From the NCBI GenBank assembly GCA_964234715.1, contig OZ174278.1: 64,000 bases of DNA; one strand, written 5' to 3'. Positions within the stretch are counted from its first letter, which is position 1; each line of letters opens with the position of its first letter. The notes under the pieces were generated by a model that saw only the letters and a program-made list of their open reading frames with translations, was not told the DNA's origin and searched no databases. Positions 7,641-46,404 of this stretch are shown here, piece by piece. This DNA is from Podarcis melisellensis (lineage: Eukaryota). The translations under genes and the position numbers were made by a program.

Positions 7641-9307
7641 GCGGGTCAGGGCATGCCACGGTTGACATTTAGAAATAGTTGTTTGTGCTTACATAGGCTG
7701 AAGATCTAGTCACTGATATCACTTATTCACCACCTAGTTGTTTCTCACCCCTTTTCTATCTGAGTTTAACTAAGTTGTTTAATTATGTTGTTTATCTACT
7801 ATATATTTTGGAAAGTAGTTTGTCCTTTATGAACTTGGGTGCCTCTTGATGTATTGTCACATAGACGGTTCCCAAGATAGAGCTGTTTTTGTCTACATTT
7901 TGAAACCACTGGATACCATTTTGAATCAAAACGGTGGGACAAACCTTTACAAATGGCACCATTTTGATACAACAGTTCCCGAGCTAGAGGGGTAGATTTG
8001 GGTCTGTGTTTGGAAACCATTGGATACCCTTTTGAATCAAGATGATGGATCAAATCTTTCCAAAATTCATTGATTTGGGCACCTTTGAAGATACTGTTGC
8101 TCAGTTTGGTATGACAGTTACTGAATTGGAGGGTTTTGGTTTACATTTGGATATTGTCAGACACAATTTTGAGCATTACCAGAATATGTGCATTAAAATT
8201 GCCTTTGGGGCTCAGGCAGCTCCAGAACCTTTCCTGGGTAGTAAGATATTTCATTAATACTGAGTTTCTGGTACAAGCATTGTTTAGGACGTGTCTTAGC
8301 ACTTTTCCTTTTCTTAGTGGACCAAGATGACTTTTTTAAAAATACAACTTGATTAAAGAATAGAATTTACACAAGAACGAAAAGGAAGAACACTACAAAG
8401 TTAATAATACATACACTTCAAATATCAATGACATACCACAGACTACTTTGAATGAGAAAAGTGTGCTAGTTTGGAGAGAAATATATGTTCGAACGCACAC
8501 AGGAGAGGCATCATTGGCCATCTGTCAGGGTCTCACTCTGATGCCAGCCTTGTGCCTCCCTGTTCAGGGTCTGTGTCTCTGAGCTGCCTGTCACTTTAAT
8601 TAATCACAATACCCCCAATGTAACATCACTCACAGTCATCATGGGACATTAAAATGTCAACCTTGCTTTTCCAGTTTCTGAATGGTTCCCAGATTTTGAC
8701 TGTGTGCTCCCTGGGGTCAGAATTTTTTTGTTTCCTTGCTAATGTTACTGCGTGTAAAGTACTATGTACATTGAAAAATACAAGTCTGTGAAGCTTCCCT
8801 GTGTGTTAATCACTGAAAACTGCAGGCTGTTGAAAAGCTGAGATCAAGGCCAACCTTGTAATTTGCTACTTGCCTAAGACAATTAGCAATTTTTATCAAA
8901 GCAAGAAGCTCTCTGGGCTCACTATCTGACCTGTGACATGCATGTGGACATTAGTAAATGCGCTAGTGAAGTATTTTTGCCTGCATTTCTTTTTGTACAC
9001 CTGGAACATGTTTCATTTTTATTTGAAAGTAAACTGTGCCTCTGCAGGAAGGAATGTGAAATTTAATGTTATGCGTACATTAAATAAATCTATGCTAGAA
9101 AGAACTTTGTGAAAAGCAGTTTTGCCCTTAGAATAACTTAATGTGTGGTTTAAAATAAATTCCACTTCCTTTTGTAAAACCAGTTGATTTCCCTGGATAT
9201 CATTCAATAAGTATCAACAAGTTGTTTTCCTTTGCCTTACTTTGTCTTATAAATCTTCTCTTATATGGTCTGATTGCCTACAGTGGCTACTTGAGGCATT
9301 GTTTTGT

Positions 9308-9322
9308 AACAATAGAGCTATC
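9308..9322 (+). repeat. 5' target-site duplication of POLD1 retrocopy
   Basis: AACAATAGAGCTATC, identical to 12937-12951. Confidence 0.95.
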
Positions 9323-9368
9323 GGGCGGGAGACTGGTCGAGGGAGTCGGGGTAGTGAGGAATGCCAAT

Positions 9369-11057
9369 ATGGAAAGCAAACGGAAGGCTTCTGTGGGGGA
9401 GCCTACTCTTTCCCAGAGGAATAAGTCGCGAGGAGGTGATTGGGAAGAGGATGGCCCCTCACAGTTTGAAGAGGAACTGGCCTTTTTGGATGAGGTAGAG
9501 GCTGAGATGGCTCTGGAGGTGAAGGAAGCACAGTTGGTACCTGATGTCATCCCCTTTGGTAATCTCTTCTCATCGGTGCAGAATCCAAAATGGCAGAGAC
9601 CACCGCCTCCCAAAATAAACCCGAAAGAGGAAGCTCTGTGTTTCCAGCAAGTGGAACTAGATTATTATGTGGGCGCTCACCTCCCTGGCTTCCCAGGATC
9701 TACTCAGGGTCCAGTTCCTGTCCTGCGGATGTTTGGAGTCACTGGAGCCGGCAACAGTATCTGCTGCCACATCCATGGCTTTGCCCCCTATTTCTATGTG
9801 CCCGCCCAGGCTGGATTCCAAGCAGAACATCTGGCTGACTTTCAGCGGGAACTGAATGCGGCTGTCATCCGGGACATGCGATCCAACAAAGACGGTCTGA
9901 CCCAAGTTGTTCTGGCAGTGGAGATCTGCAACAAGCAAAACATGTATGGCTACCACGGGCAACATCTTGCACCCTTCCTGAAAATTACTATGGCGTTGCC
10001 CCGGCTAATTGCACCAGCCAAGAGGTTGCTGGAACAGGGACTACGCTGTGGGACGCTGGGAGTGCTCCGCTATCAAGCCTACGAATCGAACATTGACTTT
10101 GAAATCAGGTTCATGGTGGACCGGGATGTTGTTGGCTGCAACTGGATTGAACTGCCTGCCGGAAAGTACCGCCTGCGACAAGAACAGCCTGCTGGAGAAT
10201 CCAGCAAGGATAACCCACCCAAGGTGTTGCTGTGTCAACTGGAGGCGGATATCACCTGGATGGATTTTGTGAGCCACCCGCCCGAGGGAGAGTGGCAGCG
10301 CATTGCCCCCTTGCGTGTGCTCAGTTTCGACATTGAATGTGCTGGACGCAAAGGTATTTTCCCTGAACCGGAGAAGGACCCAGTGATCCAGATCGCCAAT
10401 ATGGTCCTCCGCCAGGGGGAGAAGGACCCTTTTGTGCACAATGTCTTCACCTTGCAGAGCTGTGCCCCTATTGTGGGTTCCCAGGTGCTCTGCTTCCAAA
10501 AGGAGGCGGAGCTGCTCAAGGCCTGGGCAGAATTCATATGGACAGTGGACCCGGACATCATCACTGGTTATAACATCCAGAACTTTGACTTCCCGTACCT
10601 CATCACCCGTGCTCAGACCCTCAAGGTCACCACATTTCCCTTTCTGGGCCGTATTCCTGCACGTAAGTCCGTCATCCGTGACTCTTCCTTCCAGTCCAAG
10701 CAGATGGGCCGGCGAGAGAATAAAGTCATTAACATGGAAGGCAGAATCCAGTTTGATCTGCTTCAGGTTTTGCTGCGGGACTACAAATTGCGCTCCTACA
10801 CGCTGAATGCTGTCAGCTATCACTTTTTGCAGGAGCAGAAGGAAGACGTACAGCACTCTATCATCACAGATTTGCAGAATGGCTCGGACCAGTCCCGTCG
10901 GCGACTGGCTGTGTACTGCCTCAAGGACGCCTACCTGCCCCTGCGGCTCTTGGAGAAGCTCATGTGTGTCATCAACTACATGGAGATGGCCAGAGTGACA
11001 GGTGTCCCTCTCAGCTATCTCCTGGCGCGTGGCCAGCAAATCAAGGTTGTCTCCTAG
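9369..11057 (+). CDS. POLD1: POLD1 retrocopy ORF A (562 aa): N-terminal domain plus 3'-5' exonuclease; translation unproven
   Basis: Begins MESKRK in a strong context (aatATGg). ExoI SFDIECAG, Exo[14 protein letters not shown] and Exo[11 protein letters not shown] are intact. Ends at the premature TAG. Confidence 0.5.
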
Positions 11058-11072
11058 CTCCTGCGGCAGGCC

Positions 11073-12698
11073 ATGAAGCAGAATCTGGTTATGCCGGTGG
11101 TGAAGTCAGAAGGCGGGGAAGACTATGCTGGGGCTACCGTCATTGAACCTCTGAAAGGCTATTACGACGTGCCCATAGCGACCTTGGACTTCTCCTCCCT
11201 GTACCCTTCCATCATGATGGCTCACAACCTGTGCTATACCACGCTGCTGCAACAGGGGGCGGTTGATCGCTATGGGCTTTCGGCAGAGCAGTTCATCCGC
11301 ACCCCGACTGGGGACCACTTTGTGAAGGAGTCCGTCCGCAAAGGGCTGCTGCCTGAGATCTTGGAGAATCTCCTGGCTGCCCGCAAGAGGGCCAAAGGAG
11401 AGCTGAAGCGGGAGACTGACCCATTCAAGCGCCAAGTGCTGGACGGACGGCAGCTGGCGCTCAAGGTCAGCGCCAACTCTGTGTATGGCTTCACTGGCGC
11501 CCAGGTGGGCAAACTGCCTTGCCTTGAGATCTCTCAGAGCGTGACTGGGTTTGGGCGTCAGATGATTGAGAAGACGAAGCAGCTGGTGGAATCCAAGTAC
11601 ACAATCGCCAACGGTTACAGTTCTGACGCCAAGGTAGTATACGGGGACACAGACTCCGTCATGTGCCGCTTGGGTGTGCCGTCAGTCGCCGAGGCCATGG
11701 AGATAGGCAGGGACGCAGCTGCCTGGGTCTCCAGCCATTTCATTCCCCCCATCAAGCTAGAGTTTGAGAAGGTGTACGTCCCCTATCTCCTGATCAACAA
11801 GAAACGCTATGCTGGCCTCTATTTCTCTTCCAACCCTGACACCCACGACAAGATGGACTGTAAGGGCATCGAGACCGTGCGCCGAGACAACTGCCCCCTA
11901 GTGGCAAACCTCATCAACACCTGCCTACAGAAGCTGCTCATAGATAGGGACCCTACAGGTGCCGTGGCCCATGCCAAGGAGGTGATCTCCGACCTGCTTT
12001 GCAACAGAGTCGACATCTCACAGCTGGTGATCACCAAGGAACTGACACGTACAGCAGATGAATACACAGGCCGCCAGGCTCATGTGGAGCTGGCCGAGCG
12101 GATGCATCGACGGGATCCCGGCAGCGCTCCCAACCTGGGGGACCGGGTTCCATACGTCATTATCGGCGCTGCCAAAGGCGTAGCAGCTTACATGAAATCT
12201 GAAGATCCCATCTACGTGCTGGAGAATAACCTGCCCATCGACACGCAGTACTACCTAGAGCAGCAGCTTGCCAAGCCCCTCTTGCGCATCTTCGAGCCCA
12301 TCTTGGGAGAGGGCAAGGCGCAGAACGTCTTGCTGAAGGGGGAACACACTCGCTGCAAAACAGTCCTGACAGCCAAAGTCGGAGGGCTCATGGCGTTTGC
12401 TACCAAACGGAGCACCTGCATCGGTTGCCGGGCTGTGCTCAACCACCATGGTGCTGTGTGCAAGTTTTGCCTGGGCCGCCAGTCTGAGCTTTACCAGAAG
12501 GAGGTGACCCATCTGAGCTCTCTGGAGGAGAAGTTCTCGCGTTTGTGGACGCAGTGCCAGCGGTGCCAAGGGAGCCTGCATGAGGATGTGCTGTGTACCA
12601 GCCGTGACTGCCCCATCTTTTACATGAGGAAGAAAGTGCAGAAGGACCTTGATGACCAGGAAGTGCTGATCTCACGCTTTGGCCCTCCCACGTGGTGA
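11073..12698 (+). CDS. POLD1: POLD1 retrocopy ORF B (541 aa): B-family polymerase domain plus CysA/CysB; translation unproven
   Basis: Same frame as ORF A. Motif [12 protein letters not shown], motif [10 protein letters not shown], motif C YGDTDS, KKRYAG, CIGC..CKFC and CQRC..C..C are all present. Confidence 0.45.
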
Positions 12699-12897
12699 TA
12701 TGTCTTTGCCTTCCGTTCATCCGACTGAAACCCACCACCACCCATTATTCCCTTTTAAAGGCGCAGCAAGGCCCGTTTATGCTGCAGGGGAAATTGCTCC
12801 CTCCCCTTGCCCAGTTCTGCTCTGGGCATCGCTTCTGTTGCCAGGAAAAGCTCCCTGGAGATGATTGCGGGGGCTATGTTTTGTATGAATTTCTACC

Positions 12898-12903
12898 AAT
12901 AAA
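12898..12903 (+). terminator. Polyadenylation signal inherited from POLD1 mRNA
   Basis: AATAAA 15 nt upstream of the A-tail start at 12919. Confidence 0.9.
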
Positions 12904-12936
12904 GATTTCTTTTTTTCTAAAAACAAAACAAAACAA

Positions 12937-12951
12937 AACAATAGAGCTATC
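12937..12951 (+). repeat. 3' target-site duplication of POLD1 retrocopy
   Basis: AACAATAGAGCTATC directly after the A/(AAAAC)n tail. Confidence 0.95.
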
Positions 12952-13334
12952 AATTTTTGCTGTTTCTTATGACATAACCTCAACAGTTTTATGAAACAAC
13001 TGCATTGAATATGGCTATATTTCACCTTTTAAAGTGCAGTAACTTCCCTTACTGAAGATTTTTGAATCTACATAAACAATTTATCAAATTTAATATACAT
13101 CTTTTGTTTTTATTTAAATACCTTAAAATGTACCCAAGAAGTGGCATTATTATTTAGCAAATGTTTTCTAAAGCACTGTTTAATTGTGGTATGAATGTGG
13201 TCTTAAAAATAAGAAAACATGGGACACATGTTGCTTTTTGAATTTTTGAAATTCAGGCCTTCATTTTCCTTTCAAACAAGAGAATTCTTAGGTATATTTT
13301 GCTTAGTTTACCCCCTGTTTTATTTCATTGAAAG

Positions 13335-46404
<33,070 letters not shown>

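Follow-up and report, generated by a model that had tools for sequence, protein, structure and literature searches.

A young POLD1 retrocopy with a single in-frame TAG, probably drifting neutrally in a CBL-family intron of a squamate reptile

A POLD1 reading frame of 1110 codons that is broken by a single TAG, placed between its exonuclease and polymerase domains, raises the question of whether the break has made two working proteins out of one, or is simply what chance leaves in a gene copy on which selection has let go. The frame lies at 9369–12698 on the plus strand of the 64,000-nt stretch of DNA analysed here (the window). On the explanation that we favour, and that we hold with high confidence, the locus is a young POLD1 processed pseudogene of the L1 type, situated in a CBL-family intron of a squamate and drifting neutrally.

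The TAG and the two reading frames that it separates

Translation from the ATG at 9369 (A at −3, G at +4) meets stops only at codon 563 (TAG, 11055–11057, plus strand) and at codon 1110 (TGA, 12696–12698), and so reproduces the claim of the first-pass annotation that the TAG is the sole break in 1110 codons. The upstream open reading frame (ORF) (9369–11054, plus strand) has 562 codons and encodes the N-terminal and 3′–5′ exonuclease domains of POLD1, as identified by Pfam (DNA_pol_B_exo1, PF03104, at 6.7e-67; POL3_N, PF24055) and by alignment to residues 3–557 of human POLD1 (6s1m_A; E 1e-236). The downstream ORF (11073–12698, plus strand; 541 codons and the TGA) encodes the polymerase domain (DNA_pol_B, PF00136, at 7.9e-148) and the C-terminal Cys-rich zinc-finger/Fe-S region (zf-C4pol, PF14260, at 5.2e-21), and matches human POLD1 residues 559–1102 at 1039 bits. 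Both halves match the human protein end to end, and the TAG aligns with Gln558; a Gln occupies this site in 6/6 vertebrate homologues that cover it, as aligned to a readthrough version of the copy with X in place of the stop, and the parent codon is CAG (Gln).

The first-pass annotation had described the TAG as parting an ORF for the exonuclease from one for the polymerase, and the order of motifs agrees, with the exonuclease motifs on the 5′ side and the polymerase and zinc-finger motifs on the 3′ side. YCLKD occupies codons 516–520, with its Asp at codon 520, and further along come DFSSLYP, whose first codon is 607, and YGDTDS, from codon 758. Between them the two ORFs retain every catalytic motif and Cys ligand, by Pfam and by alignment to human POLD1, again as had been claimed. 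The local context was also read correctly: the base after the TAG is C, and an in-frame ATG follows 15 nt past the stop, at 11073, in the context gccATGa with a purine at −3.

Such an arrangement invites a functional reading, in which the locus would give a stand-alone 562-aa exonuclease, a 541-aa polymerase initiated at the ATG at 11073, a two-chain enzyme or a product of TAG readthrough. The intact motifs and Cys ligands of both ORFs speak for it, as do the purine at −3 of the downstream ATG, the C after the TAG and the occurrence of the TAG in two haplotypes, that of the window and that of a genome run of organism A (X1, below). We nevertheless consider it very improbable. Ahead of the ATG at 11073, the retrocopy transcript would contain 30 ATG triplets (14 in frame), so that a scanning ribosome would not get there, and in eukaryotic scanning ribosomes reinitiate to a negligible extent after an ORF as long as 562 codons. 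Programmed readthrough in eukaryotes and viruses occurs in the contexts UAG-CARYYA and UGA-CUAG. The UAG of the POLD1 copy resembles such sites in having C next, but the hexamer that follows it (CUCCUG; TAG-CTC-CTG in the DNA) fits neither motif, and there is no conservation for recoding.

Natural precedents for a divided enzyme do exist, since in some archaea and phages the exonuclease and polymerase parts of family-B polymerases are encoded by separate genes. The POLD1 copy is like these in being broken between the exonuclease and polymerase domains, with complete motifs in each ORF. However, the split archaeal and phage polymerases have their own translation starts, belong to a prokaryotic setting and carry a split that is conserved and under selection, whereas in the POLD1 copy, a eukaryotic retrocopy that brought no promoter and is apparently unfixed, the split is due to one nonsense substitution. 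Retention of the motifs, for its part, would be expected anyway at a divergence of 0.7%, and we attribute both the intact motifs and the long ORFs on either side of the TAG to the recency of the copy rather than to function.

Retrocopy structure, host intron and parent gene

Public reads from four runs (X1, X4, X7 and X23) were compared with the window over 8800–13300. X1 consists of whole-genome contigs of organism A that cover both the flanks and the POLD1 segment, whereas X4 (organism B) supplied five short pieces only, none of them in the flanks. X7 and X23 both come from organism C, X23 being raw stranded RNA whose first mates all lie on the minus strand, as fits plus-strand RNA. X7 can be taken as parental mRNA because it has a 2303-nt contig colinear with 9333–11635 and no sequence on the flanks. 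Contigs leave the window into GT...AG ends at six exon junctions of the parent (9672|9673, 10108|10109, 10766|10767, 11633|11634, 12450|12451 and 12503|12504), which marks these as sites of parent introns that are missing from the continuous copy in the window.

A perfect 15-nt direct repeat, the only one found that brackets the POLD1 unit, forms a target-site duplication with its 5′ copy (AACAATAGAGCTATC) at 9308–9322 and its 3′ copy at 12937–12951, both on the plus strand and 3629 nt apart. Parent contigs (X1, X4) match the window only from 9324 and read ...CTTGTT before that point, so that the G at 9323 (plus strand), where the parent has T, is one untemplated base at the start of the retrocopy, which may have been copied from the mRNA cap. 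Next come 45 nt of parental 5′UTR (9324–9368, plus strand; present in parent contigs from 9324 and in the X7 mRNA contig from 9333), and it was with these 45 nt, and without a promoter, that the retrocopy arrived. At the other end, the parental 3′UTR (12699–12918, plus strand) includes an AATAAA at 12898–12903 and is followed in the sequence by a short interrupted poly(A) tail (12919–12936, plus strand; A5 C A4 C A4 C ...). The X1 contig common to parent and retrocopy stops about 7 nt after 12912, near 12919, where the two diverge. Base composition changes as well, GC being 0.555 in the 10001–12000 bin vs about 0.36–0.44 in bins outside the retrocopy. The locus thus has the features by which an L1-type processed retrocopy is recognized, namely absence of introns, poly(A) after AATAAA, a target-site duplication and a disabling mutation. 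The uninterrupted ORF that would characterize a functional retrogene is missing, as both the window and X1 carry the TAG at codon 563.

The next exon downstream, at 13336–13485 on the plus strand, belongs to a CBL-family host gene (Pfam Cbl_N at 4.4e-11, and Cbl_N2), and more host exons occur on the same strand near 15940, 18400, 19070, 20110 and 21680, which places the retrocopy in a CBL-family intron in sense orientation. Among homologues of the two halves, which were searched separately, Phrynosoma partial protein models are 97% identical to the polymerase half and 88% identical to the exonuclease half, and a Sphaerodactylus partial model is 95% identical to the polymerase half; turtle (80%), frog and human identities are below those of these squamate models. 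The partial models point to a squamate genome, and a crocodilian or turtle origin, which the turtle match had suggested, was discarded in view of the 95–97% squamate identities in the polymerase half.

Its position suggests one way in which the retrocopy might matter irrespective of any protein, by acting on the host RNA through premature polyadenylation, exonization or a non-coding co-transcript. The sense orientation upstream of a host exon and the intact AATAAA at 12898 favour such an effect, as do a polypyrimidine-AG site near 9283 and a frame that is open from 9222 through the start codon of POLD1. Yet intronic retrocopies are mostly inert, and in the RNA of organism C, a species that may be without the insertion, depth on the flanks is zero and reads of the retrocopy type are absent, so that we regard an effect on the host RNA as unlikely. 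It would be compatible with the processed-pseudogene explanation and not exclusive of it.

The reads also settle to which copy the TAG belongs. In X1, a contig at depth 46.2 ends exactly at 11054 and then splits into a branch with C at 27.7 and a branch with T at about 18.8, and base 11055 is C in the X7 mRNA contig and in 3/3 X23 RNA reads. Because the parent has CAG in X1, X7 and X23, the TAG is a property of the retrocopy. The CAG>TAG change proposed by the first-pass annotation from the letters alone is thereby confirmed, with C in the parent contig of X1, in X7 and in all three X23 reads and T in a second X1 contig. The comparison of TAG with CAG in reads, which had been suggested as a check, thus finds T on an X1 branch of its own and C in the parent of two organisms. 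The split is absent from the POLD1 parent in those two organisms and from all homologues examined.

X1 represents a haplotype other than the assembled one, as it differs from the window at five flank sites (8949, an insertion at 9269, 13090, 13098 and 13099) and, inside the copy, by a 21-nt indel and at least nine differing positions. After 12846, every read set has 21 nt that are missing from the copy in the window (seen in X1, and as concordant loose ends in X7 and X23). Given its several private sites and this deletion relative to X1, some letters of the window could be errors, and the TAG might be imagined to be one of them in an otherwise intact retrogene. However, the T branch comes from independent X1 reads (about 18.8x, vs 27.7x for the parental C) and leaves a common contig that ends exactly before the altered base. 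An origin of the TAG in sequencing or assembly error has next to no probability and was rejected on these grounds.

Age, presence/absence and substitution pattern

Over about 3.6 kb, about 25 sites (0.7%) distinguish the copy in the window from the organism A parent. In the flanks, which serve as neutral sequence, the window and X1 differ by 4 substitutions in 874 nt, a level similar to the copy–parent divergence. CpG decay has barely begun, as judged from a CpG observed/expected ratio of 0.54 in the copy vs 0.17 in the flanks. Each of these measures describes a young insertion.

Contig structure in X1 bears on whether the insertion is fixed. In a k=31 graph, a genome with filled sites only would give a flank contig that extends about 30 nt into the retrocopy, and one with empty sites only would yield a single contig that runs through the site. 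The 5′-flank contig of X1 ends instead at 9322, the edge of the target-site duplication, and the 3′-flank contig begins at 12937, as follows from the just 13 letters left beyond 12950. Breaks exactly at both duplication edges fit a sample that contains filled and empty alleles. Depth in X1 agrees with this reading, being 35–39 in the flanks, about 18–20 on retrocopy-specific branches and 34–48 in segments common with the parent, although the retrocopy:parent ratio at 11055 (18.8:27.7) is no clean 1:2. A second organism A sample, X11, contains 0.51 of the sampled words vs 0.78 for X1, and a genome with the parent only is estimated to hold about the 0.51 seen in X11. From the contig ends and depths we infer that the insertion is apparently still polymorphic, one sample carrying both the filled and the empty allele. 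An insertion that appears unfixed is a further argument against a functional split or recoded polymerase.

The substitutions that have accumulated since the copy arose were examined by classing the listed differences by codon and polarizing them with organism C and six vertebrate homologues. Seven sites that cluster at 10130–10268, mostly synonymous (2 nonsynonymous, 5 synonymous), were left out of the main test, as the cluster resembles a second parental haplotype more than it does mutations of the retrocopy. Outside the cluster, among the differences listed, the retrocopy lineage has 6 nonsynonymous changes (K18N, H234R, R357H, R391W, Q563* and A900T) and 4 synonymous ones, vs 2 nonsynonymous and 15 synonymous in the divergence of the parent between organisms A and C, again among the differences listed (Fisher p = 0.025). 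A nonsynonymous share of 6/10 fits the neutral expectation of 70–74% (p 0.3–0.5) and not a parent-like ratio (p 4e-4). The 6:4 ratio, as counted among the differences listed, thus gives no indication of purifying selection on the retrocopy branch, although counts this small may also be compatible with a dN/dS somewhat below 1. Of the residues hit, K18, R357, R391 and Q563 are conserved in most or all of the outgroups that cover them and A900 in 3/5, and the change of conserved residues at a neutral-like ratio weighs against any of the proposed functional products. CpG transitions (CGG>TGG, CGC>CAC, CCG>CCA and (C)GCA>ACA) are among the changes.

The survival of a frame with just one break in 1110 codons might be taken for constraint, and it can be compared with chance. 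A random substitution in this POLD1 coding sequence has a 3.3–4% chance of creating a stop, so that with about 25 changes about one stop is expected. A single break is therefore the neutral expectation and no sign of constraint.

These observations are best explained by a sequence of events in which a full-length polyadenylated POLD1 mRNA would have been reverse-transcribed by L1-type machinery and the cDNA placed within a CBL-family intron of a squamate reptile, in the sense direction of the host gene. Arriving without a promoter, the copy would then have drifted neutrally, with CAG at codon 563 becoming TAG as one of its few substitutions, while the insertion would still be segregating in the population. 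The intronless structure, the target-site duplication, the poly(A), the CAG of the parent and the T in an independent run are direct observations, and the substitution pattern points to neutral evolution of the retrocopy. Neutral pseudogenization, which the first-pass annotation had named as its fallback, is supported by the youth of the copy, its relaxed substitution pattern and its apparent polymorphism; none of the other products that had been proposed (a stand-alone exonuclease, a proofreading-less polymerase, a two-subunit enzyme or a readthrough product) gained support.

Expression, known systems and significance

Expression could be followed in the stranded RNA of organism C (X23). Retrocopy-type letters at the diagnostic sites occur in 0 of its reads, organism C being one that may lack the insertion; the diagnostic sites all show the parental letters of organism C, and depth on the flanks is zero. 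The POLD1 of organism C is about 1.9% from the window copy, which makes it a different species and one in which the insertion may be absent. Silence of the retrocopy in its source species is accordingly presumed from RNA of organism C only. For a functional split polymerase, a copy that brought no promoter and has no retrocopy-type reads in this RNA is nonetheless an unpromising source. Exact matches to the 541-, 562- and 611-aa ORFs were absent among the called proteins of a 15-billion-sequence collection. A literature search found no paper linking POLD1 with a retrocopy or retrogene, and a 2026 preprint on vertebrate processed pseudogenes is without squamate-specific detail.

L1-mediated processed pseudogenes and polymorphic retrocopies (retroCNVs, or retroduplication variants) have been described in humans, dogs and horses (PMC4608704, PMC9435743, PMC10249811). 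The POLD1 copy is like these in being intronless and full-length, with poly(A) after AATAAA and a 15-bp duplication of an A-rich target, and also in being promoterless, inside the intron of another gene, accompanied by presence/absence evidence and disabled early by mutation. Unlike the mammalian cases, it has a squamate reptile as host, and its polymorphism is deduced from contig structure and not from population genotyping; on that footing, it is probably a retroCNV.

A small residual chance of relevance lies in effects on the host gene or in an expressed exonuclease fragment. In carriers, the retrocopy might be transcribed with the CBL-family transcript or spliced into it and so give an N-terminal POLD1 exonuclease-domain protein or, much less likely, a proofreading-less polymerase, an outcome to which we assign very little credence. 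If it were true, either product, by competing for the partners of Pol delta, could increase the rate of mutation, and a mutator or dominant-negative allele would be segregating in a wild reptile.

As a gene, the POLD1 retrocopy matters little, since it is in all probability an ordinary young processed pseudogene whose split is a by-product of random nonsense mutation. It offers a worked example of how, at 0.7% divergence, one stop in 1110 codons is no evidence of constraint. Of similarly modest value is that it marks a very recent L1-type retroposition of cellular mRNAs in a squamate lineage.

Two possible parental haplotypes

Of the listed sites at which the window copy departs from the parental contigs, seven are crowded into 140 nt (10130-10268), and five of these seven are synonymous. 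In the organism A whole-genome contigs (X1), the parent-type letters in this cluster have a depth of about 18.8 and the window-type letters a depth of about 36.5, and the intron sequence that precedes 10107 is present on two contigs. Taken together, the clustering of the differences, these depths and the two intron-carrying contigs suggest that the parent POLD1 gene itself has two diverged haplotypes at 10130-10268, one of which is the source of the retrocopy.

The two ends of the retrocopy

The target-site duplication is followed at 9323 by one additional G, where the parent has T, before the sequence begins to match the parent gene. This extra G is compatible with the reverse transcriptase having copied the mRNA cap, and a cap-derived G would place the transcription start of the parent POLD1 gene at 9324. 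A TTGGCGGGA (E2F-like) motif adjoins 9324. The main POLD1 start is preceded, at a distance of 8 nt, by an out-of-frame ATG at 9361, which opens an overlapping upstream ORF that originates from the parental 5'UTR. The POLD1 frame is also open upstream (9222-9368), across the duplication and into the host intron, and includes a polypyrimidine tract and an AG near 9283; in the run examined, this stretch is not covered by any RNA read.

Towards the other end, the window copy lacks 21 nt at 12846, where the X1 sequence reads TCAACGGCTGATACCATCAGG. Because these 21 nt are present at full shared depth in X1, are also visible in the mRNA contig (X7) and the raw stranded RNA (X23) of organism C, and the gap is flanked by CAGGA microhomology, the gap is either a slippage deletion private to the haplotype that was assembled or an error in the assembly.

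Polyadenylation signal within the host gene

In the region 13336-21750 the + strand carries exons of the CBL-family host gene, which is CBLB-like by motif, at approximately 13336-13485, 15940-16090, 18400, 19070, 20110 and 21680. The motifs tried did not locate, within the window, the host exon that precedes the retrocopy. An AATAAA and its cleavage site are intact at 12898-12918, in sense orientation within the host gene intron, and could cause host transcripts to end prematurely in carriers.
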